Positions 3 through 46,036 of a DNA stretch of 64,000 bases are shown piece after piece. The stretch is taken from the IMG/VR virus record IMGVR_UViG_3300042350_004191, positions 124,001 to 188,000 of that record; one strand, written 5' to 3'. A program made the position numbers and the translations under genes. Below the pieces are notes generated by a model. The model ran no database searches and was not told the origin of the DNA. It saw nothing but the letters and a program-made list of their open reading frames with translations. The stretch's first letter is position 1. Every line of letters starts with the position of its first letter.

Positions 3-3000
3 CTGGCAAACAGATCTTTCGGTATTAATTCAAATACATCCAACATATCTAGTAATTCTGTTGGGATTTATACTACAAATACAAATGTAAACCTTAGTTC
101 ATTCGCAGTCGGTGGTCGGAATAATACTGTGGTGAATAATTCTTTTGGTTTGAATTCTTTAAATTCAAACATATCTGGTAATTCTGTAGGGATAAATGTA
201 AATTCATCTAATTTACTATTGAGTTCATTAGGTATAAACTCTTTAAACAGTTCTATAACTTCAGGCTTTGCTCACAATTCAATTAGCGTACAATCCATAA
301 GCTCTATAGCATTAAACACGACAAATTCTCAATTGAGCAGTTCTGTTATTGTAATAGGTAACAATAATGCAGTGAACAATTCAGTATTGTTTAATGGTAA
401 TAACAATCTTACACAGGACAATTCGGTTGCGATTTCTTCTAATTCAAACAATCTAAGTGCAAATGCATTTTCTACATTATCAAATACTGTAACAGCAAGA
501 AGAAATGCTACTGTTTTTAATTCTACAAACAGCGTAGTATCTTCGAATGCAATACAAATAAATGGTATTAATAACAATGTTGATAATAATAGTATTTCTA
601 TTTTAGGAAGCACAAATACTATAACCTTAACCTCTGTTGGTATTGTTTCTGATGTTAGTAGAATCATTAACAACTCAACAAACATTAACAGTTTAAGAAA
701 TATTGTTTCTGCAAGATCTGTTTCAATAAACACAGGTTCTACAACTTTGATAGATAAAGGAATTGCAATCGGTTCTTTAAATTCAAACGTATCTACTGGT
801 TCTATAAGTTTTAATAGTAATAGCGTAATTTTACAATTAAGTGGTATAGATATATCTGGACGCAGTAATACTGTCCAAAATAGATCCACAAATATAAACG
901 GAAGTAATAACACGGTCCAAAATGACAGTGCTACATTTAATACTATAAACAGTACAGCCTCTGCAAATTCACTAATCTTTGGTGGTGGCTTAAACAGATC
1001 AGTTATCAATTCACTTGTAATGAATTCAAGTGGTAGTAGAGCATCTGATGGTAGTTCTGTCATAGGTGGAAGATCTACTACCGCAAATTTAAGTTCTGCT
1101 GCAATTAATACATTCAATTCTCAAATAAATGGCATTAACTCTTTAGTTTTGGGTGGTAGTGGTCATAATTTTAGATCAGGAAATTCTGTATATTTAGGCG
1201 GTAAAGATAACGAAGCTGCTTCTACATACGGAGGAACTACCATTGGTGATAAATCTATAATTTTAGGTGGTGAAAAGGTTAGAATAGGATCTAATAGTAT
1301 TGCAGTTGGAGGACTAAACAACAATTTACAAAATGGTTCTATTACACTCGGTGGTAGTGGAAATGATACAGCATCTTTCAGTAATGTTGTTATTATAGGA
1401 AGAAACAACGTGACAGCAAACAGGGGTGACATAGTTTATCTTCCTGAAATTAATGCTTTGGGTAACTTAACAATCACAGGTAACGTATCCGCTTCTGGTA
1501 CATTTACAAATGTCAGTACTACCACAGGCACAGTTTCTTCTTTGGAATTAAATAACCTTTTATATCCTTTACATACTCTGGTTGTTAATCAAAACACACA
1601 AGCAGGAAATACTTTTGAAACTGCATTGTTTAGTTTTTACAACAACCCAAGAATGTCTGTTAACAACACTGGCGTTGCAATTAATACATTTGAAAGAACA
1701 ACCAATCCAAATCAAGCATTAACTGTTAAAGGTAATGTGTCTGCATCTGGAGGAATGAACCTTGAAGGAACATTAAATTTGGGTTTTGATACAAACTTGT
1801 ATCGTTCTGATACCAATGTTCTCAAAACAGATGACAATTTAAATGTTGGAATATTAGCAACAGGAAACACAGACAACGTAATAACACACAGTTCAAATAC
1901 ATTACAACAAAGAAATATAAATCCTAGAGCATGGGATACTACAGCGACTTTCTTGAGTGGTAGTCCAACAGTAAATCGTGTTGTTAAACTCACAAATACA
2001 AACACAATAGGTGATACTATTATTACAGATACAGGAACTAATGTCGGTATCAATACAACTACACCTAATGAAAGATTAACAGTTGTTGGTAATATAAGTT
2101 CTAATGCAGCTTTACAGTTGTCCGAAGGTACAACACAAAGTAATGGTATACAATTTGGAACAGATACAAATATATATCGCTCTACTACCAATTTATTAAA
2201 AACTGATGACAGTTTAGAGGTTACATTAAACTTAAGAGTCAGCGGTGATACAATTTTGGGTGACACTAATAACGACACTTTAACTGTACTTGCTGCACCT
2301 ATCAATTTAACCAATGCAACAACAAATACAAAAGCTTTGATATTTGGAACAGACACGAACCTTTACAGACCAAACGCTGATTTGCTCAAAACTGACGATA
2401 GTTTAGAAGTTACATTAAATTTAAGAGTAAGTGGTAATACAATTTTAGGCGATACTAATGATGATACAGTAACAATTTTAGCTGGTCCAATTAATTTGAC
2501 TAATGCAACTCAAGCATCTGATGCTTTAATTTTTGGAACTGATACGAATCTTTATCGTTCAACAACCGACACCTTAAGAACAGATGATAATTTTGTTATA
2601 GGAACATTAACAACAAATACAAACGGTAATAGTATAATAGTTGAAAACTCTGGAAAATTAGAAAAAAGAACAGTAAATCCAGATATTTGGGATACTAATG
2701 CAAATTTTGTAAGTGCTGTTTCTTTAAATTCTTTTATTCAAAATCGTGTATTAAAAGCAGATAATGCTGCTGGTATTACAAACAGTATTATTACAGATAA
2801 TGGAACTAGAATAGGAATCAATACTGCTGTTCCTTCTGGGACGTTTCATGTTTCTGGTAATACGCCTACTGGTGGTAGTAGTATTTGGGTATCTGGTCAG
2901 ATTCCCCATCTTACAATAAGTGAGTCAGACGCATCAACCGATAATAAAAATTGGGATATTACAACAGATATTGAAAATATTTATTTTAGAGCAGTAAATG

Positions 3001-5384
3001 ATGCTTATAACGCAGCAAACAATTATTTAATCGCTAATAGAACAGGCATTAATATTGATAGTGTTGTATTTCCTAATGGTAATATTGGTATAGGGACAGG
3101 TACAGGTACGCCTAACGAAAAATTAACAGTCATTGGATATATAAGTGCTAGTAGACCAAGTGGTGGAATAGGAAATATGGCCTTTGTCAATCCATATGAG
3201 GCTGGTGTTTCATTTATAAACACAACCACAAATCAACAATGGGACATTTTAAATAGTGCTCCATCCTCTCCTTTATTGGGAGGAACCTTGGCTTTTTATA
3301 ATAGGAATTTACCAGCTTCTGTGATGACTCTTTCTGGATTTAATGTTGGTATAGGGACATCATCACCAAATGAAAGATTAACAGTTAATGGAAATATAAG
3401 TGCTAATGGTGGTTTATACTTAAATTCAAACAATACTGATGCCACAGGAATTCGTTTTGGATCAGATGCTAACTTATATCGTTCCAATACAAACACATTA
3501 CAAACCGATGATACGTTTGTTATAGGTCAAAGTGCAGTTATACTCGGTACATTTTTACAAAATGCAAATACATCAAATGCTGTAGCAGTTAGAGATACCA
3601 ATACAGGCACATTAGTTGGTAAAACTATAAATTCCAGAATGTGGGACACTAATGCTACTTTCTTAAGTGCGGATTCTAGTCCAACATTAAATTCTGTACA
3701 AAAATATACGGGTCCTAATAGTCTAGGTGATACGGCTATTATAGACGATGGTTCTAATATATTTCTTAATAATAATACAATAGTTGATGATAGGCTTTTT
3801 ACAATACAAGACGATGCCTTTCCACAAATCCAATTACAAGATAGAACATATGTAAGCAACTTACCTACCAACAGATGGGCAATGTGGGTTAATATGGCAG
3901 ATATTAATAGCGGTCTTAATAAACCACTAATAATAGGGCCGTTGAATCAAGCTGGTTCTGGTAATGGATTATTAACATTAACTAGACCGTCTAGTACTAC
4001 AAATGCAATCGGTAGCGTTGGTATAGGTACGTTTGGACCATTAGCAACATTAGATGTCAATGGTACTGTGAGGGTTGGTACATTAAATATCGGCACAACA
4101 AATAACGTAGTAACACATAATAGCAATATTCTTCAAACAAGAAATATCAATCCTAGAGCATGGGATACTACTGCAAGTTTCTTGAGCGGTTCTGTTACTA
4201 ACAACACAATCCTTAAAGGTTCTGGACCAAATGCTGCTCAAAACAGTAATATTACTGACAGTGGAACAACTGTAAGTGTTGCAGGAAACGAATTTGAACT
4301 TAAAAAAGCTTCTGGAGCAGTCAACTTTAGATTATTTAATGGGACCACAAACAACTGGCTTATTGACCATAATACAACTGCTGGTGTATTAAATTTTGCA
4401 TATGGTGCAGGTGGTTCTAATACTAATAGACTTATATTAGATGCTACTAACCAACTTGTTAATGTACCTAATCGTTTACTGGTTAATGGTGCTGCTAATA
4501 ACGGGTCTTATAGTGCTATTGTAAATGGTAATATTCTAGCAGAAGATGCAGATGTTTTTGGTAATAATATATATGCAAGAACACTAACAAATACCATTAG
4601 TAGTCAGGTTGGATTAATAGCTGGTACTACTAATGCGGCGGGTTACATTGCATGGAACAGGCCAGATGGTCAAAGAATGGCATACATGGGTTGGAACACA
4701 AGTGGTAAAAATAATTTACATTTACAATTAGAGCGCACTGCATCATTTTATATTGGTGGTGGTAAAGTGGGTATCAATACATCTCATGAGAATTTACCAT
4801 CTAACCTTACCGTAAATGGGACGGTATCGGCTACGCAGTTTTATGGTGAAGGTGTAGTTCCTGTTGGAATGATTATGGCATACACTGCCACAACAGCCCC
4901 TGATGGATGGTTACACTGTAATGGTGAAACTATTCCCGCAACCGGAACTTCTATTCAAAATGTGGCTGTTACTAAATTACAAGCATTAAGAGCACATTTA
5001 TCAACTAGATTTGGTGTTGCTGGTCAATTGCCAGACCTTCGTGGTGAATTTATAAGAGGATGGTCAAGTACTAGAACAGGTGTTGGAGACGATAGTAGAG
5101 TATTTGGATCCGCACAAAGTGATGCTATAAGGAATATTTCAGGTTCTTTTGGTGGTGTAAATGGTGGAGCTAGTGTTGCTTATCAATGGGGATTTAGGCC
5201 CGGATCAGGTACTGGTCCATTTTCTGTACCTTATTCAAGAGGTGAATATAACAAATACAACGGTCTGTATTATCCAGCCGCTGGTGTAGCAGATTCAGTT
5301 TTCTTTAATGCTGCTCTTCAAGTTCCTACTGCTGCTGATAACCGTCCTAGAAACATAGCATTAATGTATTGTATTAAATACTAA
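3..5384 (+). CDS. Long tail fibre protein, 5'-truncated; Asn/Ser beta-solenoid, repeated shaft modules, C-terminal tail-collar domain
   Basis: Frame is open from nt 3, so the GTG at 129 is not the true start. N-terminal ~14-aa Asn/Ser repeats; repeated NVGINTTTPNERLTVVGN and FGTDTNLYRS...LKTDD modules; C-terminal collar signature PVGMIMAY...APDGWLHCNG...LPDLRGEFIRGW...RPRNIALMYCIKY. Confidence 0.9.
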   Translation: MANRSFGINSNTSNISSNSVGIYTTNTNVNLSSFAVGGRNNTVVNNSFGLNSLNSNISGNSVGINVNSSNLLLSSLGINSLNSSITSGFAHNSISVQSISSIALNTTNSQLSSSVIVIGNNNAVNNSVLFNGNNNLTQDNSVAISSNSNNLSANAFSTLSNTVTARRNATVFNSTNSVVSSNAIQINGINNNVDNNSISILGSTNTITLTSVGIVSDVSRIINNSTNINSLRNIVSARSVSINTGSTTLIDKGIAIGSLNSNVSTGSISFNSNSVILQLSGIDISGRSNTVQNRSTNINGSNNTVQNDSATFNTINSTASANSLIFGGGLNRSVINSLVMNSSGSRASDGSSVIGGRSTTANLSSAAINTFNSQINGINSLVLGGSGHNFRSGNSVYLGGKDNEAASTYGGTTIGDKSIILGGEKVRIGSNSIAVGGLNNNLQNGSITLGGSGNDTASFSNVVIIGRNNVTANRGDIVYLPEINALGNLTITGNVSASGTFTNVSTTTGTVSSLELNNLLYPLHTLVVNQNTQAGNTFETALFSFYNNPRMSVNNTGVAINTFERTTNPNQALTVKGNVSASGGMNLEGTLNLGFDTNLYRSDTNVLKTDDNLNVGILATGNTDNVITHSSNTLQQRNINPRAWDTTATFLSGSPTVNRVVKLTNTNTIGDTIITDTGTNVGINTTTPNERLTVVGNISSNAALQLSEGTTQSNGIQFGTDTNIYRSTTNLLKTDDSLEVTLNLRVSGDTILGDTNNDTLTVLAAPINLTNATTNTKALIFGTDTNLYRPNADLLKTDDSLEVTLNLRVSGNTILGDTNDDTVTILAGPINLTNATQASDALIFGTDTNLYRSTTDTLRTDDNFVIGTLTTNTNGNSIIVENSGKLEKRTVNPDIWDTNANFVSAVSLNSFIQNRVLKADNAAGITNSIITDNGTRIGINTAVPSGTFHVSGNTPTGGSSIWVSGQIPHLTISESDASTDNKNWDITTDIENIYFRAVNDAYNAANNYLIANRTGINIDSVVFPNGNIGIGTGTGTPNEKLTVIGYISASRPSGGIGNMAFVNPYEAGVSFINTTTNQQWDILNSAPSSPLLGGTLAFYNRNLPASVMTLSGFNVGIGTSSPNERLTVNGNISANGGLYLNSNNTDATGIRFGSDANLYRSNTNTLQTDDTFVIGQSAVILGTFLQNANTSNAVAVRDTNTGTLVGKTINSRMWDTNATFLSADSSPTLNSVQKYTGPNSLGDTAIIDDGSNIFLNNNTIVDDRLFTIQDDAFPQIQLQDRTYVSNLPTNRWAMWVNMADINSGLNKPLIIGPLNQAGSGNGLLTLTRPSSTTNAIGSVGIGTFGPLATLDVNGTVRVGTLNIGTTNNVVTHNSNILQTRNINPRAWDTTASFLSGSVTNNTILKGSGPNAAQNSNITDSGTTVSVAGNEFELKKASGAVNFRLFNGTTNNWLIDHNTTAGVLNFAYGAGGSNTNRLILDATNQLVNVPNRLLVNGAANNGSYSAIVNGNILAEDADVFGNNIYARTLTNTISSQVGLIAGTTNAAGYIAWNRPDGQRMAYMGWNTSGKNNLHLQLERTASFYIGGGKVGINTSHENLPSNLTVNGTVSATQFYGEGVVPVGMIMAYTATTAPDGWLHCNGETIPATGTSIQNVAVTKLQALRAHLSTRFGVAGQLPDLRGEFIRGWSSTRTGVGDDSRVFGSAQSDAIRNISGSFGGVNGGASVAYQWGFRPGSGTGPFSVPYSRGEYNKYNGLYYPAAGVADSVFFNAALQVPTAADNRPRNIALMYCIKY
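2150..2600 (+). repeat. Tandem ~63-codon (189 bp) repeat in tail fibre shaft
   Basis: FGTDTN(I/L)YR...LLKTDDSLEVTLNLRVSG(D/N)TILGDTN(N/D)DT...PINLTNAT occurs twice plus a partial third copy, similar at DNA level. Confidence 0.85.
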
Positions 5385-35292: not shown

Positions 35293-36090
35293 ATGGATTT
35301 TATTAGAAACCCAAGCAATCCAGATATATGTGAATTGCCTAAAGTCTTACCTGATTTTTCTAAGTTTCCAGGTATTACCTCAAATTTAAATAACTTAAGC
35401 GCAAGTATAGAACCTTGGCTTTGCGAAATATTAAAGATTGCAGGAGATGAAAGTAAAGACCCTGTATTAAGACCGGGTAATGAACCGGATTACAGTCCGT
35501 TCTTTGATTCATTAACTGGAATGAAGGGAGTTGGAGATCCTAGAGTTGATTTAGGATTTGTCATGACAAAAACTTTGGAAAAATATTTGCCACTATTAGA
35601 TGTTAAATTGAAAGTTCTCCAAGAGGGTTGTCAAATTATAGAAGAAACCTTGTGCGATAGTGACGGAAAACCTGTATATAAATTAAAGAGTGACTGTGAT
35701 TATGGCGAGGAAATAACATTTGATAGCGTTGCACAGTTTACTCAAAATATTTGGGAAGAAGAAACAACTAAAGCAGCCAATTCTTTTGCTGATTTTATTA
35801 AAAGAACATATGTAGACAAAAACTGGAGCGTAGAGCTTTATGCTATGGGTGATGGTAATCTACTAAAAATTGCTAGAGGACAAAGTATACCGATCTTTTA
35901 TGTGAGAGCATCATCAGGTAATCAGATAAAGTTTCACAAATATTATTTTGATGCTAGAGAAAAAGTATCTAAAGCTCTCAATATTAAATTGAATATAAAA
36001 GATTATAATTTGTTTAACAACGTTAACAATTTTCAAGAAAATACACAATTAATGCAAGTTTTAAGTGGCCCTTATTGGCCTGAGAACTAA
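35293..36090 (+). CDS. Hypothetical protein
   Basis: 265-aa ORF, convergent with gp5. Confidence 0.7.
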   Translation: MDFIRNPSNPDICELPKVLPDFSKFPGITSNLNNLSASIEPWLCEILKIAGDESKDPVLRPGNEPDYSPFFDSLTGMKGVGDPRVDLGFVMTKTLEKYLPLLDVKLKVLQEGCQIIEETLCDSDGKPVYKLKSDCDYGEEITFDSVAQFTQNIWEEETTKAANSFADFIKRTYVDKNWSVELYAMGDGNLLKIARGQSIPIFYVRASSGNQIKFHKYYFDAREKVSKALNIKLNIKDYNLFNNVNNFQENTQLMQVLSGPYWPEN

Positions 36091-39000
36091 CATTTTGTAT
36101 CATCGACTATAATATCAATATTACCATCTGGTAAGCGTTTAAATCTGATATTGCTGCTTTGTAAACGTGTATTTGTAAAACCGGGTACTTTATCTCCGAT
36201 TCCGAAGGAATTCATTTTGTTATAATTGAAACGGCGACCACCAGAACCACCACCCCAACCACCAAATCCACCGCAACCAGCCAATGTTTTAGGACCACCA
36301 TCAGGCCCCTGACCATTGCTTCTTGCTTTGGTTGGAATAGGTCCCGGTTCTACCGCAGAATTCCTTACACCCTGAACATCATCATAATAATTCCCCTTTG
36401 GTTGAGTGTAATCATGATGGTGAGGTTTTGGATCTTCTAATTGATTATGATGCCAGTTCCAGATCCAGCCCCAAGAAACACCCGGTCCTGCTGCATTACA
36501 ACAAAAACCCAAATACAATCCAGTAGGCACTGGTTCAATTACTGTATTGATATAAATTGTATTATAAATTTGCATAACAGCTTTAACAATGTTTGTGAGG
36601 TTTAGCATAGCACCCGGCATTGCATAGTGTGTTAAAGCTGTCCTTACAGTATTTAAAATATCATTAGTCTGTGCAGGGCCAGTTGCCCAAGTTGTAAAAG
36701 GTATTCTTTGATCTGGTGAACTTCCTTGGTCTGATTGGGTTCGTTGTCCAACTGTATTTAAAAACGGCACAGACAACTCTCCATCCAATCTCATCCCACC
36801 AACAACACCTACGTTTCCGGTTGCACTAAATCCTTTGCAAACCATAGTGGGTGAATTTATTTCCACACCACCTTTATTAGTCCTATCATTTGCGTCTATG
36901 GTAACTACTCTACCTTTTAAAGTAGTATGATTTTTTGATCCGAAAACCATTTCACCGTCTGAAGCTAAAAGTTCAACAGAACCACAATTTAATTTTAATC
37001 TTCCTTTAGTATTTAATTCTATGCCAGCAGCACCAGCAACTATTTGTACAGAATTTCCGCCACGCAACATAAGATTACCGGGTAAATTGATCGGTGGGGT
37101 ATAAACAACGTTTTTTATTTCAGCAGATTTATGCCTTTGTGCAATGGTTTGTCCATCATTTGATTTTGTTTGTGTACCAACAGAAACTGACTTATTAACA
37201 GTTTCTGCATAACATGGCGCATCGTTCATTCCTCCGGGTAATCCAGCAGAAATCACAACATCTTTTGATGCTGTAACTGTAAAACTTCCACCATTTCCTA
37301 ACTGTTGTTCTGCATCAGCAATTTCTTTTTGTTTACTTGATAACTTTTTAGCCGCTTCTTTATTTGCATTTTCTATGGGTTTTTGTGGTGAAGGTATTTC
37401 GCCTTTATCACAATCAGGATTACCACATTTACCTAAGACATGCCCCGGTACAACCGAAGTAAATGGAACTAATATTAATCCCAATAAAAATTGGAAAACG
37501 TCTATAGCATACGAAAAATAAGGTGGTAATAAATTTCTTAAAAAGTTAAATGCTCTTTTTGCAAAACTTGATGCTCTGTCCACAGCATATGATGTGGAAC
37601 ATAAAGGACACGGAACTTTTTCTCCGCTTTTTGCTGTATTTTTTATCTGTTCTACTTTTTCTTTTTGAACAGTTTCGGTTATAGTTTTTAATTTTTCTAT
37701 AGCAGCTATTTCTTTATCCGTCATTCTACCAGCATTTATAAAAATATCTGACTCAACATCTGTATGAGATGTTGTGCCTATTCTTGCATTATAAGAGCCT
37801 CCTAATGATGTAAAAGCATCTGCTCTAGATTGAATATTTAAAGTATCTTGAGCTACCAATGACGTACCAGCACCATGAACCATTAAACCAGATCCTCTAG
37901 CCAACACTTCAAAAGAACTTGTATCTGTTATTAAATTTCCATCTTTTAATTTTGTATCGGTCATTGACATTTTAACTGGGCCTGATGCAAAAACGTTACC
38001 AACTCTAGCTGAATCTACATCAAGACCAATAACCGAATCAGAACCTGTTTGTATCATTTTTTTCATTGTTTCGGGTTCCAATGAATTTGCAAAATATATA
38101 GGTTTTTGAATGTCACCAGCTAAAAAGAATACAAATACTTTTGCACCAGGAAATGGTATCGATATCATTCCTGATGCTTGATCACCAGCAAGACCAGGAT
38201 CCGTTATCGGAGCATGAAAATTCGGGTTTGGAGAAGTTTGTGATCCTCCTCTAGCAGCAGCATAACCTGTTTTACCCTCTAATACATCACCCTTCCCTGC
38301 TGCTATTAAATCTTCAGCGGCAGATGCACCGGGTGGCACAGTACCATATTTTGCAAGCTGTGCTTTGACATCTTCAGCACTTTTACCTATCGTAGATTCT
38401 CTCCCTAAAACTTCAAAATTTACATTACTTACAGTATTATTAACGTTATACGTACTTCGATCAACATACATGTCTATTGTAGATCCTTGATTTGAATTTC
38501 CGTGTACGTCTGAAACTATATATACATAATTTGTTCTAGTATCTCGAATCACAGTTCCTACTGGTAAAAATTTATTATTTTGTGGAACTGCAATGATGCC
38601 TGGTGTTAGATTTTGTCCTTGAGAAGAATATCCTTTAGAAGTCCAAGAATCTGTTGTTTCATCGCCTACTGTTGTATATTGAAATACTTTGTCAGCAACA
38701 AAACTTCCTTGAACTTCTGGAGATTCTGTTGTTGTTGCGTCTTTTACTTCCAGACTTCCTTCGGTTGCTGTACTATGTGGATTTACTGTTGTTCCAGCAA
38801 CACTTTCGGATGGTTGCGTTATATCACCTCCATAATTCGGATCGAATTTGCCGTGTAAAATCTCAAATCGTCTACCATCGGGTAATTCAAATGTAGCTCT
38901 ATCTCCTACTTCTCCATTTTTAAATGTCATAGAAGAATTGTCTACCCATCTAGCTCCATTACTAAGAGTTAATGCTGCCTGTCTATTACCAAAAGCAAAA

Positions 39001-39548
39001 TCCCATCCACTGTGAGTACGTGTTCCCCCGTCCCTAGATGCATAAAAAGTTCCACCTGATGTAGTGGTTCCAGATGAAAGAGGGCTACCATCTACTTGTA
39101 CATATTGGTCTAAATCAGTTCTTTCAAAAAATCCTCTACCAACTTGTTTAATATCATAATGGCCTATTTTATTACGGGGTGATCCTATTTTTCCTTGTAT
39201 ATAAGCACCTTTTTGTGGATCTGTTACAGGAAAAGTTCTACCAGCATATGTGTCAGTTATACCTGTATTTGGATTATATGTCGCAGAAGTACCTCCACCA
39301 AATATAGGACTAGCACATTCAGCCCAAGGTAAAACAGTTTTTAATTCTTCTACTAATTCAGGAGTTAATGAACCAGAATCATGAATATGTTTGAAATTTT
39401 TGTTACTTAAATCTTTATTCCAACCAGCATGTAAAGTATTTGTTAAATAAGGAATCCATATTTGTACACGGCCTCTGAATTCTGGATCTTTATTATTAAC
39501 AACAATTCCTAAATGATTACCATAAATTGGTTCTTTTGAGAGACTCAT
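36087..39548 (-). CDS. 5: Baseplate central spike gp5-like protein with inserted peptidoglycan-active domains
   Basis: Gp5 OB fold GIVVNNKDPEFRGRVQIWIP...LPWAE...IPFPGAKVFVFFLAGDIQKPIYF; beta-helix-like repeats; M23-like HSGWD and 3D-like IAVP...SD..G...IDMY inserts. Confidence 0.82.
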   Translation of the reverse strand: MSLSKEPIYGNHLGIVVNNKDPEFRGRVQIWIPYLTNTLHAGWNKDLSNKNFKHIHDSGSLTPELVEELKTVLPWAECASPIFGGGTSATYNPNTGITDTYAGRTFPVTDPQKGAYIQGKIGSPRNKIGHYDIKQVGRGFFERTDLDQYVQVDGSPLSSGTTTSGGTFYASRDGGTRTHSGWDFAFGNRQAALTLSNGARWVDNSSMTFKNGEVGDRATFELPDGRRFEILHGKFDPNYGGDITQPSESVAGTTVNPHSTATEGSLEVKDATTTESPEVQGSFVADKVFQYTTVGDETTDSWTSKGYSSQGQNLTPGIIAVPQNNKFLPVGTVIRDTRTNYVYIVSDVHGNSNQGSTIDMYVDRSTYNVNNTVSNVNFEVLGRESTIGKSAEDVKAQLAKYGTVPPGASAAEDLIAAGKGDVLEGKTGYAAARGGSQTSPNPNFHAPITDPGLAGDQASGMISIPFPGAKVFVFFLAGDIQKPIYFANSLEPETMKKMIQTGSDSVIGLDVDSARVGNVFASGPVKMSMTDTKLKDGNLITDTSSFEVLARGSGLMVHGAGTSLVAQDTLNIQSRADAFTSLGGSYNARIGTTSHTDVESDIFINAGRMTDKEIAAIEKLKTITETVQKEKVEQIKNTAKSGEKVPCPLCSTSYAVDRASSFAKRAFNFLRNLLPPYFSYAIDVFQFLLGLILVPFTSVVPGHVLGKCGNPDCDKGEIPSPQKPIENANKEAAKKLSSKQKEIADAEQQLGNGGSFTVTASKDVVISAGLPGGMNDAPCYAETVNKSVSVGTQTKSNDGQTIAQRHKSAEIKNVVYTPPINLPGNLMLRGGNSVQIVAGAAGIELNTKGRLKLNCGSVELLASDGEMVFGSKNHTTLKGRVVTIDANDRTNKGGVEINSPTMVCKGFSATGNVGVVGGMRLDGELSVPFLNTVGQRTQSDQGSSPDQRIPFTTWATGPAQTNDILNTVRTALTHYAMPGAMLNLTNIVKAVMQIYNTIYINTVIEPVPTGLYLGFCCNAAGPGVSWGWIWNWHHNQLEDPKPHHHDYTQPKGNYYDDVQGVRNSAVEPGPIPTKARSNGQGPDGGPKTLAGCGGFGGWGGGSGGRRFNYNKMNSFGIGDKVPGFTNTRLQSSNIRFKRLPDGNIDIIVDDTKC

Positions 39549-39552
39549 AATA

Positions 39553-41259
39553 TTATGTTCCAGTTGTATTGGAATCTAATCCAAAATTATTTGTAGGTGT
39601 ACCAAAATCACTCGGAGAACCAGCTAATGTTTTTGCGACATTATAAACACCTTCATTTATATAATTTTTACCTTTAACTAAATCTCTACCCATATTATCC
39701 AACGATCTTTGAACATTACCTCTAAATTCTGTTAAAAATTCTGGCATTACTACATTTCTGGAGGGGGAATTTGGGTCGAATAATTGTACTTGTCCAGTTA
39801 TTCCATATTTTCTAAATACCGCTGCTAAAGGATATAAAACAGGTGCTTGTGAACCAAACTGGTTTAAAAGACCGCCCATAACATCGCCTTTTAGATAATA
39901 AGCCATGTATGTATATCCATACTCCGATAAAACAGAACCCAAATAACCTAAAGGATCATTTCCTACACTGTTAACAATATTCATTATATTTTGTACTTCT
40001 TCAGGCAAGTAAGATGTCAAACTTCCGACTGGATCTGATAAAAATTCAGTTATTTCTGGGGCAATACCAAATTCTTCCAAAATGTCTGATATTTTAAGAG
40101 AACTTGAAAACCATTGCGTAAACATAGTTAAATCTCCAGCGAAAATAGATATAATATCCAAAATGAAACATATAATTTCCAAAGGTATAATTCTATCCAG
40201 TAAAGTTAATAACCATTGCATAATAACACCAGCAATTGAATCTAGTGCAGCAACAAATTCTTTCACTAATTTTAATGCTCCTTGATAAATTTCATTTATC
40301 ATTTGAGCTATGTATGCCACCACTCCTGTTATATAGTTAATAGCATATTGAATAGAACCTAATACACCAGCAGGAAGTGCTAAATATGCTTTTCCTTTTA
40401 AAACATTTATATATTTTTCTAATTCTTCTGTAAATTTTGGATGAATTTTATTTAATGCTTGTTCTAGTAAAGACGGAACTTGTTTTTCAGAACCAGTCAT
40501 TGGATTGTTAGGTAAATTATCAGTACTAGAAACAAGAGTGTTTCCTATTGCTCCTATGTCTTCGAAAAATTTATTTTTATATGCTGGTGTTTTTTTAAAA
40601 ATAGCTTGTAAGGTTGGATTATAATATCCTTTAGTGATAGCATTACCTCTATACCACATGTACATTAACATGTTACCTTCTATTGATACTGGCTGATCTT
40701 TTAAATTTCGATTTACACTACTTTGAATTGTTTTACCCGCTGCTGCTGCACCATTTAACAAAAGATAAACCCATGCTGACAATAAATTATAATTCGTACC
40801 AGTTAATGATGATGCTAATACACAAAGATCGTTTAATGTCAATCCCGCCGCTCTACCTACAGTATCATAATCTATAGATATTATTTCTCCCGTAGTACCT
40901 GTTTTGGTTTCAAATTGTGTTCTTGTTCCTTGATTTAAAGATTTAGCAGTTTCGGGTGTAACTCCCCTAGGAGCATCTGGATCTTCAGGACCCGGCGCAG
41001 ACCCCACTGCCAATCTACCACCACCAGATACTGCATCAAAGTCATCTTGTGAGATCAATTCATTAGACCAGTCCATAGGAGATTCAAAACCACCGCTTGA
41101 ACTAGATCCTGATGTATCTACAGTAGGCCCTGTTGAGGCCGAAGTTTGGGTTATTCCACGACCATATTGTGATCGATCCCCTGATGTAACAATAGGACCT
41201 CCTTGCGAAGTTACATCTTCAGCAGTAGTTGGTAATGGAATTATTTTATTATCGCCCAT
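39553..41259 (-). CDS. Putative virion protein with long hydrophobic helical region
   Basis: 568 aa; Gly/Ser/Thr-rich N-terminus; hydrophobic aa ~295-385; exact TATAAATA 7 nt upstream. Confidence 0.6.
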   Translation of the reverse strand: MGDNKIIPLPTTAEDVTSQGGPIVTSGDRSQYGRGITQTSASTGPTVDTSGSSSSGGFESPMDWSNELISQDDFDAVSGGGRLAVGSAPGPEDPDAPRGVTPETAKSLNQGTRTQFETKTGTTGEIISIDYDTVGRAAGLTLNDLCVLASSLTGTNYNLLSAWVYLLLNGAAAAGKTIQSSVNRNLKDQPVSIEGNMLMYMWYRGNAITKGYYNPTLQAIFKKTPAYKNKFFEDIGAIGNTLVSSTDNLPNNPMTGSEKQVPSLLEQALNKIHPKFTEELEKYINVLKGKAYLALPAGVLGSIQYAINYITGVVAYIAQMINEIYQGALKLVKEFVAALDSIAGVIMQWLLTLLDRIIPLEIICFILDIISIFAGDLTMFTQWFSSSLKISDILEEFGIAPEITEFLSDPVGSLTSYLPEEVQNIMNIVNSVGNDPLGYLGSVLSEYGYTYMAYYLKGDVMGGLLNQFGSQAPVLYPLAAVFRKYGITGQVQLFDPNSPSRNVVMPEFLTEFRGNVQRSLDNMGRDLVKGKNYINEGVYNVAKTLAGSPSDFGTPTNNFGLDSNTTGT

Positions 41260-41288: not shown

Positions 41289-41600
41289 TTACCACTTACC
41301 AACAGGACACTTTTCAGCTTTCAAATAAGTTTTAACAGACAAATAACAACCACATTTTTGACATCTTTGTGCTTCAGCAGAAAAAAATTCACAACCTTGA
41401 CAAATTGATAATCTTCTATTAGCCTCTGCTGGATCTATTCTTAAAGCATTTCCTTGAGCAACGCTTGCTGCATTTCTAACAACGCTTTGAGCAGCATTAG
41501 CAGCCATTCTACCTAAAGAAGGCATCTGTGGCTTATTGGAAGACTGTAATTGTCTTAATCTCGTCTGTTCTAATCTTTGTTTTAAATAATCAGGATTCAT
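41289..41600 (-). CDS. Small Cys-rich protein (DUF6171-like)
   Basis: RRLSICQGC...RCQKCGCYLSVKT...CPVGKW. Confidence 0.7.
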   Translation of the reverse strand: MNPDYLKQRLEQTRLRQLQSSNKPQMPSLGRMAANAAQSVVRNAASVAQGNALRIDPAEANRRLSICQGCEFFSAEAQRCQKCGCYLSVKTYLKAEKCPVGKW

Positions 41601-41603
41601 AAA

Positions 41604-43229
41604 TTACCAATTTTTATCGTCTAAAACAGACCAATGGTTATGTAAACCATCGATTTTATTTGCATAAACGTCTGTAATGTATTTACTACTATCGAAATAA
41701 TGTACAACTTTATTAATGAGCCATTGTCCCAAAAACTTATCATCAAATGCATTTTTATCGGATGAGTCTGATCTGTCGATAAACAAAAATGTACCGGGTT
41801 GTCTTAGCGTCAATCCTTCTGTTTGAAAATATAATGCTTGATTTAAAAATATTGCATCTTTTAACATTTTTACCATCATCATGTCAGGTGGACCTTGTGT
41901 GTAAAATGCATTTTCTACACTCAAACCTTCCAATTTAGTTTTGTTTATATTTAACCAAATCTGATTTGGTCCATTTGTATTGTTCAAGAAAGAATACAAT
42001 CCTTTTTTTCCTAATGTCTCTAAATTTTCAAATATTTTTTCGGCTTTATTTTCTTCAAAATGAATACTGTATGTTCCCGTATTAAAATCCATTGTATGTG
42101 TTGGTCTATTAATTAAACGCATATCATCCACAGGAGCCATAGCTGCAAATTTATAGTTTTTCATCACAGATGTTCTTCCAGAAAAAATATTTAAAATCTT
42201 TTCATTATTATCATCAAATAAAGCAGCCCTAGCAATATAGGCTAATGTTTGTGGTTCCAGTCCGTCTTGAAGAGTCATTCTTTCAATTTGTTTGGCTTTT
42301 GAAAAAATATCACTTAATGATATTAATGACCATTTTTTATTATATCTATCTAATCTTAAAAACACTGGATCATTATCGAACCCTTTAGCATAAGACATCA
42401 TAAATTTTATGTCATCTATTGTTTTTGCGTTTGCTGGTGACGTATAAAACACAAGATTATTAGGGTCGTTAGTATTTGTTATATTCCAATTATCCTCATC
42501 AATATTATCAAAAGGTAAATTTGGGTTGTCAATAGAACCGCCGCTATCAAAACCTACTTTTAATTCACTAGTTTGTTCTTTTCCTAGAGTAAAATCGTTA
42601 CATGCGGCAGTTTTTATAATAGATTTAATTGATTCGTTAGGATTCCACTTTCTTTCTATGTCTGTAAGATAAGAAACAGAAACATTCCTCTGCTTTGCAA
42701 TATCGTTTGCTGGTCCATGAGTAGACGTTGACCATGGAATATTTCTTTCTGATAAAATTTGATATCTTTCATCTATAAAATAAATTTTTTTAAGTTTGGC
42801 TGTAGCTGAATTAGTTTCAATATCTTCAACATCATATACAACAAAATCATAATCCATTGTCCATGTTTCAGGTTTTATTAAAGGATTTCCATTAGATAAT
42901 GTTTCTATTTTGATATTAATACGGTTTCTACCATCGTGTCTAAAAACAAAAAAAGCATCTGTGCTTGTAGTATTTTGATTTTTCTCGGTATCTGATACTG
43001 TTTTAGCTGTGGTAGATCTTTCTATTACTTCAAAATCGTTTTTTAATATAATCCAACCTTTTGTCCACCAATTTGTTAAACTTTCTTCTATAACCAAACT
43101 ATCTACAATCTTGAACGGAAGGCTTAAAGGTTTTTTTGTTACAGTATTGAAAAAAACAATTCTTATGAGATAATATTGGTCTTTTATTAAGACAATATCA
43201 CCTTTATTTTTATTTAATTCTCCAGCCAT
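41604..43229 (-). CDS. Baseplate hub protein, gp27-like
   Basis: LVIEESL..W.KGWIIL at N-terminus, GLTLRQPG...FLGQWLINKVVHYF at C-terminus; near gp5. Confidence 0.6.
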   Translation of the reverse strand: MAGELNKNKGDIVLIKDQYYLIRIVFFNTVTKKPLSLPFKIVDSLVIEESLTNWWTKGWIILKNDFEVIERSTTAKTVSDTEKNQNTTSTDAFFVFRHDGRNRINIKIETLSNGNPLIKPETWTMDYDFVVYDVEDIETNSATAKLKKIYFIDERYQILSERNIPWSTSTHGPANDIAKQRNVSVSYLTDIERKWNPNESIKSIIKTAACNDFTLGKEQTSELKVGFDSGGSIDNPNLPFDNIDEDNWNITNTNDPNNLVFYTSPANAKTIDDIKFMMSYAKGFDNDPVFLRLDRYNKKWSLISLSDIFSKAKQIERMTLQDGLEPQTLAYIARAALFDDNNEKILNIFSGRTSVMKNYKFAAMAPVDDMRLINRPTHTMDFNTGTYSIHFEENKAEKIFENLETLGKKGLYSFLNNTNGPNQIWLNINKTKLEGLSVENAFYTQGPPDMMMVKMLKDAIFLNQALYFQTEGLTLRQPGTFLFIDRSDSSDKNAFDDKFLGQWLINKVVHYFDSSKYITDVYANKIDGLHNHWSVLDDKNW

Positions 43230-43232
43230 ATT

Positions 43233-43838
43233 TTATTTGCATACATTTTCATTCACATTAGACTCCAAGCTAACATTGATTTGATTATAACTGAAAGATG
43301 CTGTGCTTGTAATTTCGACACCATCTTGATGTGAATAATTAATTCCACCCAAAGAAGTTATAAATGCTCCTTCATATTCAAATCTTATAAGTTTTCTATT
43401 ATATTCATCTAATGTTATAATTGTTAATGTCGTAGTATAATCAGGAAATTGATTTTCTAATTCTAACTCTGGATTTGGTGGGACTTCGGCTGATCTTAAA
43501 ATTTCACTAGAAGAATTTCTAGAATCATTAAAAAGATTTAACCAATTCCAAAGAATATAATAATTATGATACCCGTTATCTATAAAAAATCTAATATCCA
43601 TTGATGGATAATCTGGTCTTGAGAAAGAACTGGTTTTATAAGTTTGTCCACCGTATCCTAAACTTATAGACGGAATACTAATATCAGGTACTGACATGTT
43701 GTATATACTCAATTGAACTTTATCGTCATTAAAATCAGATTTTAATTTAGGATCATAAAGATTGTCTAATGCTTTGGGTAAAGCAAAAAGAAATATAAAT
43801 TTATCGTTTCTAGACTTGTTTAAAATAGATTGGTTCAT
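43233..43838 (-). CDS. 3: Tail tube terminator/completion protein gp3-like
   Basis: SVPDISIP, MDIRFFIDNGYHNYYILWNWL, FEYEGAFITSLGGINYS, ASFSY tube fold. Confidence 0.7.
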   Translation of the reverse strand: MNQSILNKSRNDKFIFLFALPKALDNLYDPKLKSDFNDDKVQLSIYNMSVPDISIPSISLGYGGQTYKTSSFSRPDYPSMDIRFFIDNGYHNYYILWNWLNLFNDSRNSSSEILRSAEVPPNPELELENQFPDYTTTLTIITLDEYNRKLIRFEYEGAFITSLGGINYSHQDGVEITSTASFSYNQINVSLESNVNENVCK

Positions 43839-43841
43839 ATA

Positions 43842-45677
43842 TTAAAATAAAATAACAGGAGAATTGTTTTCTTCATTTAAAGAATTTTCCGTTTTTTCTC
43901 CATCTTTATTACTTATATTAGGTTTACCGTCCCAAAGGTTACTAATCCAATTAAATAGTTCCATTTGATCATTTGTTGTTGGTCCAATTTCATCTTGTCC
44001 TATAAAGGATAATGGTCTATAATTGTTTTCTGTTTTTTTATAAAGACTACTTTTACCTAAAAATAAAGAACTCTTTTTTATTAGCTCAGAATTGTTTACA
44101 AATGGTTTAATTTTTAGTGGTCTACCTTGATCATCAACATCATGAATATAAAAATATTTTTCTACTATAGAAGGATCTAAAATGAAAAGACACCAAATTA
44201 AAGCAAAAACTCTGTCATCAAAATCATCATTTGTTCTTTTACTATATGTATAGTTTGGGTGTTGAATAAAGTTATTAATTTCTAAAAGTGTATCTAAATC
44301 ATAAAACTCAACAGCATTTAGAGAATTTATCCAATATCTAAGATTTGCAGTTCCTCTATATTTTGTATTAGTATGACTATGTATTCCTAGTCTATTATCA
44401 TTTTTATAAAATTTGCTCATACCTTCGCTATAGTATGATACAATATTTTCATAATTATGAATTTTACCTAAAACATCTAAAACCTGTTGACCACTATTAT
44501 TGTTTTCAATTAACACAGGAGGTCTTCCCCAATCGTCTAAAATACCCATTAAACGTGTACCGAAATGATATGGACTAATTTCATTATTAGCATAAATGGC
44601 TGCTTGTTTTATGTTGGTCAAATCCGAAACGTTCATAATCTGGACAACAGTATTTGATCTACCTATACCTTCACCTACGTCTACGCCCACTACATAAAAA
44701 TCATTTTCTTTAGGAAAATCGAATATTTTATATGAACCTTCGTCTAAAATTAAAACAGGCTCTTTACATTTAGCTTTTAATTCTTCTAAAAGTTTTGTAT
44801 CAATAACAGCTTTACCTTTTGTAAAAAATTGATTTCCAAATTCTTGTTCAAAATCTTGTTCAGAACCTAATTGAGCTATAGTTGAGCGTTTCCATTCTTC
44901 ATCTCTACCGGGCACATCCCACCAATCAACTCTTTCTAAATTCCAATCATTATTTTCTTTTAATGATTCTTGATATATTTCGTAAAATTTATTATCTGTC
45001 CCGTTAGGTGTACTAATAACAATTATTTGTGAGTTTTTAGAAGATGAAATAATAGGTATTGCAGACTTCCACAATTCTTTCATAACTTCATTTGGACAAT
45101 GTGCCATCTCATCGATAAGAAGAAGATTGCTAGTAGATCCGCGAGGTCCAGCACTTGATGTTGTGCTGACTTGTATAGCAGAACCATTACCTAAAGCAAA
45201 TCCGTTTTTTCTCCAAGACTTAACTGGTGGTTTTAAATATAAAGGCAATTCTTCAAATGCCATTTTAATACGTGCAAAAATTTCTTCAGCAGTATCGGCT
45301 TTGTTTGCAACTATAGTAATTCTTTTGTCATCAAAAAAACAAGTAAGCCATAATGCATAAATTGTTATAGTTGTAGTTTTTCCACTCTGACGGCTTGATA
45401 ATATAATGTTAAATCTATTAGATTTATAAGATTTTAATAATCTTTTTTGGTATTTATAAAGTTCAATTTTTCTTCTACCCTCATCAAGAGTTAATATAAA
45501 AAAATGATTTTCAGCAAAATGGAGAATACTTTTTCTGCATAAACGCAGATCGTCTTCCATTTCTTTTGTCCACTTTAATGTAGCATTTCCTCTTAAAAGG
45601 TTTTCATTACCTTTATAAAATGCTGCATCTACCAAAATGTCATCTGGATCTACAGGTTTTACATTTGTTTTTGGCAT
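43842..45677 (-). CDS. 17: Terminase large subunit gp17
   Basis: LYKYQ, SSRQSGKTT, LLIDEMAH, ISTPNG, WWDVPGRD, FEQEF, GVDVGEG, DDRVFAL. Confidence 0.96.
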   Translation of the reverse strand: MPKTNVKPVDPDDILVDAAFYKGNENLLRGNATLKWTKEMEDDLRLCRKSILHFAENHFFILTLDEGRRKIELYKYQKRLLKSYKSNRFNIILSSRQSGKTTTITIYALWLTCFFDDKRITIVANKADTAEEIFARIKMAFEELPLYLKPPVKSWRKNGFALGNGSAIQVSTTSSAGPRGSTSNLLLIDEMAHCPNEVMKELWKSAIPIISSSKNSQIIVISTPNGTDNKFYEIYQESLKENNDWNLERVDWWDVPGRDEEWKRSTIAQLGSEQDFEQEFGNQFFTKGKAVIDTKLLEELKAKCKEPVLILDEGSYKIFDFPKENDFYVVGVDVGEGIGRSNTVVQIMNVSDLTNIKQAAIYANNEISPYHFGTRLMGILDDWGRPPVLIENNNSGQQVLDVLGKIHNYENIVSYYSEGMSKFYKNDNRLGIHSHTNTKYRGTANLRYWINSLNAVEFYDLDTLLEINNFIQHPNYTYSKRTNDDFDDRVFALIWCLFILDPSIVEKYFYIHDVDDQGRPLKIKPFVNNSELIKKSSLFLGKSSLYKKTENNYRPLSFIGQDEIGPTTNDQMELFNWISNLWDGKPNISNKDGEKTENSLNEENNSPVILF

Positions 45678-45682
45678 GATTT

Positions 45683-46036
45683 TTATTTATTAATTTGTTT
45701 TGATATTTCAGCCAGAACTACCCCAACGTAATTGGGTCTTAAATATTTTATAAGCGTTTTTGATTTTATTTTCTCAAAGGGGTCTAAAACACTATTATAT
45801 AAACATATTAACCACCACAAATTCATATTACCATAAATTCTATGAGATATGGAGTACCATGTATCAGTGTAGTCTGATATATATTCTCCTTCCAATTCAC
45901 TGTTATTTGACGGGAAAATTGATATATTTTTTAATAAATTAAAAAAACGAAACCCTTGGTCATTTTCGTATATATTAAAAAAATTTTCGTAACTAAAAGA
46001 ACTACTATTAATTTCTGGTATATCTGTTTTTCTCAT
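45683..46036 (-). CDS. 53: Baseplate wedge gp53-like (LysM-like)
   Basis: DTWYSISHRIYGNMNLWWLICLYNSVLDPF. Confidence 0.75.
   Translation of the reverse strand: MRKTDIPEINSSSFSYENFFNIYENDQGFRFFNLLKNISIFPSNNSELEGEYISDYTDTWYSISHRIYGNMNLWWLICLYNSVLDPFEKIKSKTLIKYLRPNYVGVVLAEISKQINK

Follow-up and report, generated by a model that had tools for sequence, protein, structure and literature searches.

The central spike protein gp5 of phage T4 is said, in work attributed to Kanamaru et al. 2002, to carry a GH24 lysozyme after a contiguous OB fold. Here we describe a gp5-like spike encoded in a window of 64,000 nucleotides, positions 124,001 to 188,000 of IMG/VR virus record IMGVR_UViG_3300042350_004191. 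The spike resembles T4 gp5 in being of the trimeric-spike type, in having an N-terminal OB fold (Phage_base_V), wall-degrading enzymes (predicted in the present spike) and a long C-terminal body, and in being surrounded by contractile-tail genes. It differs from T4 gp5 by nesting two predicted enzyme domains, here termed domain A and domain B, inside the OB fold, and by being without a GH24 domain. We estimate a probability of approximately 0.8 that the gene encodes a split-OB spike with a circularly permuted M23/LytM endopeptidase (domain A) and an MltA/YuiC-type double-psi beta barrel (DPBB) enzyme (domain B).

M23 peptidases belong to the most thoroughly studied wall hydrolases, and enzybiotics are being developed from them. 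In phages they occur at tail tips and in tape-measure proteins (PMC9662197), which is also the niche of domain A. Domain A is similar to the M23 enzymes (LytM/lysostaphin type, virion-borne in phi29 gp13 and Tal2009) with respect to five catalytic positions, i.e., H-x3-D, a lone His and H-x-H/D, and the two show profile-profile homology with a Prob of ~95% and a partial structural match. The sequence order of domain A is a circular permutation of that of M23, the HxH-type strand coming first. Asp takes the place of the second HxH His in 93% of the members, and the old termini are joined by a conserved segment of ~25 residues. The M23 profile PF01551 fails to detect domain A.

The hub protein gp15 of the Anabaena myophage A-1(L) (PDB 8kea) contains a peptidase domain and, at residues 266-430, a DPBB 'endoglucanase', each of which was shown to lyse Anabaena cells (PMC10966104). 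Baseplate proteins with several lytic domains are therefore already known. The hub of A-1(L) and the present spike are both baseplate proteins with several wall-degrading domains (predicted in the spike), and Foldseek matched domain B best to the DPBB of the hub. However, gp15 is a gp27-like hub and not a spike, its domains are appended to a barrel and not inserted in an OB fold, and its identity to domain B is only 19%. YuiC and MltA share the DPBB fold with domain B, and the motifs surrounding their second and third Asp can be aligned with it. Domain B differs from them by lacking the first Asp and the MltA insert domain, by a match that falls below all family thresholds, and by a helical extension after the domain that is conserved within the spike family. 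Pairs of virion-borne endopeptidases and glycosidases are well known, and no concept is overturned by the spike; the chemistry and the role are already known, and what would be new is the chain topology, the ligand set and the nesting site.

The OB Fold Is Split by an Insert

The spike open reading frame encodes a protein of 1153 amino acids (aa; P0001), in which the region 38403-39212 corresponds to aa 113-382. The features of the gene, its OB fold and the insert are:

36087..39548, minus strand: gp5-like central spike gene, 1153 aa (open reading frame and translation; Phage_base_V over the cut-off; myophage neighbours)
39420..39512, minus strand: OB fold part 1, aa 13-43 (Pfam profile positions 2-32)
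39291..39332, minus strand: conserved strand LPWAECASPIFGGG, aa 73-86, forming the final stretch of scaffold ahead of the insert; 10 homologues keep it (nearly) unchanged, the next ~370 residues being cassette-dependent
39144..39212, minus strand: domain A piece 1, aa 113-135, matching the M23 C-terminal G-x-x-G...S-T-G-P-H-x-H strand, here H130-x-D132 (hhalign to M23 102-117)
38850..39083, minus strand: domain A piece 2, aa 156-233, matching the N-terminal two-thirds of M23, with H179-x3-D183 and H232 (hhalign to M23 7-82; VIA-align)
38454..38663, minus strand: domain B core, aa 296-365, predicted DPBB, 3D/MltA-like, with D347 and D359 (YuiC as top PDB match; VIA and Foldseek matches to DPBB)
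38094..38189, minus strand: OB fold part 2, aa 454-485 (Pfam profile positions 40-70)

The Pfam profile Phage_base_V (PF04717) scored 27.9 bits on the whole spike, relative to a cut-off of 23.8. The match consisted of two pieces, aa 13-43 (21.6 bits) and aa 454-485 (17.5 bits), and ~370 residues therefore sit within the OB fold. The split was found to be identical in homologues. When ten relatives were aligned, aa 1-99 and the part from G460 onward were nearly invariant, and the stretch between them differed by module. The initial annotation had the OB fold interrupted after ~aa 85 and resumed at ~aa 460, in agreement with both the Pfam pieces and the homologues.

Homology of Domain A to M23 Peptidases

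Domain A carries the motifs K113...H130-Y-D132-I-K134, H179-S-G-W-D183 and GDRATFELPDGRRFEILH (G215...E-I-L-H232) at the residues quoted earlier; H232, the last residue of GDRATFELPDGRRFEILH, had been quoted without a number. The consensus of the domain A family around H130 is G-N-I-G-P-T-S-T-G-P-H-x-D-V-K, compared to the M23 signature G-x-T-G-x-S-T-G-P-H-L-H-F-E. The H-x(n)-D zinc motif of M23 is present as H179-x3-D183, which hhalign aligns with its M23 counterpart. The H-x-H motif is not present, the spike having H130-x-D132 instead, and the motif order along the spike is H-x-D, H-x3-D, His and not that of M23 (H-x3-D, lone His, H-x-H).

We compared a domain A profile of 146 sequences with an M23 profile by hhalign. 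With the family in its native order the score was 36.1 (Prob 80%, P 1.4e-5) and family positions 51-119 matched M23 positions 7-82 only. Tandem duplication of the family profile gave a score of 51.5 (Prob 93.9%, P 1.5e-7) and a match to M23 7-117, with the alignment crossing the junction into the H-x-D strand G-x-I-G-P-x-S-T-G-P-H-x-D. A de-permuted family profile, cut after aa 155, covered the same M23 positions, 7-117, with a score of 51.4 (Prob 95.4%, P 1.8e-8). The reciprocal comparison of the native family with a duplicated M23 profile also scored 51.4 (Prob 94%, P 1.4e-7), and its alignment was colinear over the whole domain, running from the HxH strand of M23 copy 1 into copy 2. Each piece also matched M23 alone: piece 2, with HxxxD and the downstream His, was aligned to M23 7-82 with a P of 1.8e-6, and piece 1, with HxD, to M23 102-117 with a P of 6.6e-5.

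In controls, 100 column shuffles of the HxD piece scored 36.9 ± 1.0 (maximum 42.5), so that the real piece 1 lifts the joint score 14 standard deviations above the shuffles. Reversal of piece 1 resulted in a score of 36.8, and a reversed M23 profile or domain B scored ~13. Removing the degenerate NlpD-like rows from the M23 profile did not change the result. Taken together, these comparisons support a relationship of domain A to M23 peptidases that goes beyond chance and is seen only with the halves swapped. The initial annotation had proposed that aa 113-134 resemble the C-terminal HxH strand of M23, altered to HxD, and that this strand precedes the N-terminal parts of M23. The first proposal agrees with the match of piece 1 alone and with the family members that have HxH, and the second with the score in swapped order relative to the shuffles. 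Among the papers searched, none described a permuted M23 peptidase.

In the hhalign register H130 corresponds to the first His of HxH and D132 to the second. The first His of the M23 HxH does not bind the zinc but activates the water, while the second is a zinc ligand (PMC9662197). Position 132 is Asp in 136 of the 146 members and His in the other 10, and these ten fit the assignment of D132 to the position of the second His. The remaining positions were highly conserved: H130, D183, H232 and G233 were kept in 146/146 members and H179 in 144/146. Domain A always occurs as one unit, from the invariant Y116 through H232-G233. In 72 of the 146 members the protein ends 3-9 residues past the H232 equivalent and thus has no space for an HxH further along the chain; in the others at least 50 residues follow.

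AlphaFold2, run with the 146-row alignment, returned domain A as one compact domain at low resolution (pLDDT 89.1, pTM 0.83), and piece 1 was included in this domain with a pLDDT of 88-97. Among the top 30 matches found by VIA-align, 17 were M23/LytM chains. They aligned residues ~40-134 of the model to the N-terminal part of M23, e.g., residues 188-267 of LytM (2b0p). A match of the N-terminal part only is expected when a sequential aligner is applied to a permuted fold, and it is weak evidence if taken alone.

Distribution of Domain A

An exhaustive HMMER search with a 9-sequence profile against 1.84 billion representatives identified 269 clusters at E ≤ 1e-3, 74 of them at E ≤ 1e-30. Domain A was found in tape-measure proteins that also contain TMP_3 or Tape_meas_lam_C, and in a fragment of a tape-measure protein (Foldseek E 2e-12). 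Among cyanophages, it occurs in Synechococcus phage P60 as part of an internal virion protein (Foldseek E 3e-7; tblastn E 5e-4) and in S-TIM5 as part of a virion protein. Viral proteins of ~960 aa with an SLT domain are further hosts. The hosts of domain A are proteins that exit the virion and cross the wall, and these contexts are typical of virion-borne lysins. Neither the spike nor its insert, nor nine members of the family, nor the phage genome as a whole gave a hit to PF01551, whose cut-off was not reached. A search of PDB sequences with the domain A profile returned a chitinase only (E 0.16), which we take as noise. In a language-model atlas search an M23 cluster ranked first with a score of 0.81, which served as a lead only.

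Domain B Resembles a Double-Psi Beta Barrel

We compared a domain B profile with 177,635 PDB sequences. The best match was the 3D-domain enzyme YuiC, over the whole domain and with the motifs in register. In YuiC, D162 is the catalytic carboxylate (D308 in MltA), D151 (D297 in MltA) binds the -2 sugar, and D129 is the third Asp (PMC4499186). D359 of the spike aligns with D162 and D347 with D151. T303, G306, P316, G317, P329, Y343, D347, D359 and Y361 were invariant in the 7 domain B relatives. All top matches of the domain B model, by VIA as well as by Foldseek, had the DPBB fold, the best Foldseek match being the A-1(L) hub gp15 with an E of 0.01. Based on this model and the alignments, the assignment of domain B as a DPBB nearest to YuiC/MltA and the A-1(L) hub is supported. 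The initial annotation had likewise placed a 3D/DPBB-like domain after domain A, and D347 and D359 are both present in it.

Other searches added little. An hhalign comparison with the single E. coli MltA gave a P of 0.3, though the correct motifs were aligned. No usable stand-alone relatives of domain B were found in a word search, a tblastn search of phages with the 3D region of MltA gave nothing useful, and a scan of genome contigs gave only near-identical enterobacterial MltA, too uniform to build a diverse 3D profile from. A viral scan for domain B added 5 loci only. A domain B relative with 52% identity was found on a viral contig of 210,956 bp (L037; IMGVR_UViG_3300034101_004588). Its presence in a phage of near-equal size suggests a clade of ~210-kb phages with this type of spike.

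The OB-Fold Loop of Spike Relatives Holds Different Cassettes

A word search identified 44 spike relatives, of which ~30 have a scaffold of 1150-1280 aa. The first cassette position was occupied by domain A in P0003, P0004, P0005 and P0013, by Peptidase_M15_3 in P0011, P0012 and P0014 (in the last from the alignment only), and by other sequence elsewhere. The second position held domain B in P0003 and P0006-P0010, a GH24 lysozyme in P0004, P0005, P0011, P0012 and others, and a glucosaminidase in some. On the same scaffold we found Peptidase_M15_3 combined with GH24, domain A combined with GH24, and another first domain combined with domain B. VanY was carried by smaller spike relatives. The sister spikes P0011, P0012, P0014, P0031, P0038, P0042 and P0044 have Peptidase_M15_3 with GH24, a glucosaminidase, or VanY in the OB-fold loop. 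All recognisable cassette modules were peptidoglycan hydrolases. Judged from these alignments, the OB-fold loop of the spike family appears to behave as an exchange site for lytic domains.

Alternative Readings of the Two Domains

A number of observations weigh against the assignment of the two domains as a permuted M23 endopeptidase and an MltA/YuiC-type enzyme. For domain A, the M23 reference profile was one that we assembled ourselves from 22 sequences, namely E. coli K-12 MepM and NlpD and M23 domains from viral contigs, and no curated model of Pfam, PHROGs or NCBIfam matched the domain. An M23 hidden Markov model run with HMMER against single family sequences scored at most 23.6 bits, even when these were de-permuted, so that the relationship is visible at the profile-profile level only; the search with swapped halves that the initial annotation had called for was in this way positive by hhalign and too weak to be of use by HMMER. 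Foldseek found no match for the domain A model in the PDB. For domain B, the match to YuiC has an E of 0.29, and two of the three conserved Asp of 3D domains are present, the first (D129 in YuiC) being absent. Pfam 3D (PF06725) gave no match across the genome, and none in the 7 domain B members even with E as high as 10. The domain B model is of moderate quality (pLDDT 60 overall, 75-90 in the core), and expansins and other non-lytic DPBB proteins scored equal to MltA.

Domain A could alternatively be a truncated or degenerate LytM-type module with a binding or regulatory and non-catalytic function, like EnvC and NlpD, in which the H-x-D resemblance has arisen by chance. The weak single-sequence scores would fit this. 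So would the structural alignment, in which M23 matched no more than the final two-thirds of the model and several of the best hits were non-catalytic LytM factors (EnvC, DipM and SpoIIQ). However, the H-x-D segment by itself matches the HxH region of M23 and raises the joint score far above the shuffles, an H-x-H occurs at this exact position in 10 of 146 members, and the segment is modelled with high confidence inside one compact domain. Moreover, the five catalytic positions are (nearly) invariant, unlike those of degenerate LytM factors, and we regard such a module as improbable. LAS enzymes have common His/Asp zinc motifs, and Peptidase_M15_3 is found at the equivalent position of sister spikes. 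Domain A might on these grounds be another LAS-type or an unrelated metallopeptidase, e.g., M15/VanY-like and in non-permuted order. We tried this assignment and rejected it: hhalign against the M15 domains of the sister spikes gave a Prob of at most 3% for the native, duplicated and de-permuted profiles, the zinc motif has the M23 spacing H-x3-D and not H-x6-D, and no M15 chain was among the structural matches. It is very improbable.

Domain B could be a DPBB module that is not lytic or lytic in another way, such as an expansin-like wall-loosening domain, a carbohydrate-binding domain or a hydrolytic 'endoglucanase' like that of the A-1(L) hub. The top Foldseek match is this very hub domain, called an endoglucanase by its authors, and the lack of a Pfam 3D match and of the first of the three Asp points in the same direction. 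On the other hand, the 3D enzyme YuiC was the only sequence-level match in the PDB and covered the whole domain, the counterparts of its D162 and D151 were invariant in 7/7 relatives, and the sister spikes hold a glycan-cleaving GH24 lysozyme or glucosaminidase in that position. We regard a module of this other kind as fairly unlikely.

Proposed Function of the Spike

In the mechanism that we propose, the N-terminal OB-fold loop of the central cell-puncturing spike would be the plug-in site for a two-enzyme cassette. Sheath contraction would drive the spike through the outer membrane, after which domain A (aa ~113-233) would cut peptide cross-links locally and domain B (aa ~296-365) would cleave glycan strands. 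The putative zinc ligands of domain A are H179, D183 and D132, where Asp replaces the usual second His; H130 and H232, the latter at the end of the domain, would form the water-activating pair. In domain B, D359 is the putative catalytic carboxylate. Both domains would open the wall, and the tail tube could then pass. We infer the zinc binding for domain A, and the bond specificity and the role in infection for both domains.

A broader reading has, in our judgement, a somewhat better than even chance of being right. Domain A would here found a circularly permuted branch of the M23/LAS metallopeptidases that has gone unrecognised and has a His-Asp-Asp zinc site. This branch would occur only in penetration proteins carried by the virion, namely spikes, tape measures and the internal virion proteins of podophages, across the three morphotypes of tailed phages. 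The OB-fold loop of the spike family would be a natural plug-in site for the exchange of lytic domain pairs. If true, the M23 fold tolerates a re-wiring of the chain, and ~270 sequence clusters of unannotated phage lysin domains join M23, including those of cultured cyanophages such as P60. Many tape-measure proteins and internal virion proteins have 'domain-less' stretches, for which this would account. An OB-fold loop that hosts interchangeable enzyme cassettes would also aid the annotation of spikes and the engineering of phage spikes in laboratory systems of phage and host.

The Spike Gene in Its Genome

The source is a large marine-type phage, a contractile-tailed myophage of 210.6 kb; the virus record has 210,586 bp and is estimated to be 99% complete. 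Genes for the tail sheath, the tail tube and the baseplate wedge are located within 17 kb on the same strand as the spike gene, and further neighbours on this strand encode the large terminase and a tape-measure-like protein. Because the neighbours are contractile-tail and baseplate genes, we assign P0001 as the central gp5-like spike of a large contractile-tailed phage. The whole spike protein gave no match at E 1e-5 in a tblastn search of 50,697 phage records and none in a phmmer search of PDB sequences.

The part of the gene that follows the OB fold is:

36090..38051, minus strand: spike body, aa 500-1153 (faint DUF2345 trace only)

No Pfam or NCBIfam family matched the body. The sole trace of a known family was a faint match to DUF2345 (VgrG-type) at aa 825-859 with an E of 0.15. 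The body has Cys pairs near aa 650 (C-P-L-C) and near aa 715 (C-G-N-P-D-C), and aa ~1045-1065 are rich in Trp and His, with three consecutive His. As far as these residues can tell, the C-terminal body may form a metal-binding spike tip.

Upstream of the spike gene two open reading frames of 568 aa (39553-41259) and 541 aa (41604-43229), both on the minus strand, were without a match in Pfam or PHROGs, and one of them may encode the gp27-like hub. A small Cys-rich protein of 103 aa (41289-41600, minus strand; DUF6171, phrog_13558) is encoded next to them, with the gene at 39553-41259 lying between it and the spike gene. The gene order is unusual in that the large terminase gene (43842-45677, minus strand) is located between the genes for the tail tube (43233-43838) and the baseplate wedge (45683-46036). 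The tape-measure-like protein P0192 (47096-50224, minus strand, 1042 aa) has repeated glycine-rich membrane-type segments. It was considered as an M23 peptidase and rejected as such, since the PHROGs matches to 'peptidase/endolysin' came only from aa 514-578, which appears to be a glycine-rich membrane-type repeat; neither an M23 domain nor domain A was found in this protein. At the start of the window a very large open reading frame of 1751 aa is located on the plus strand (129-5384).

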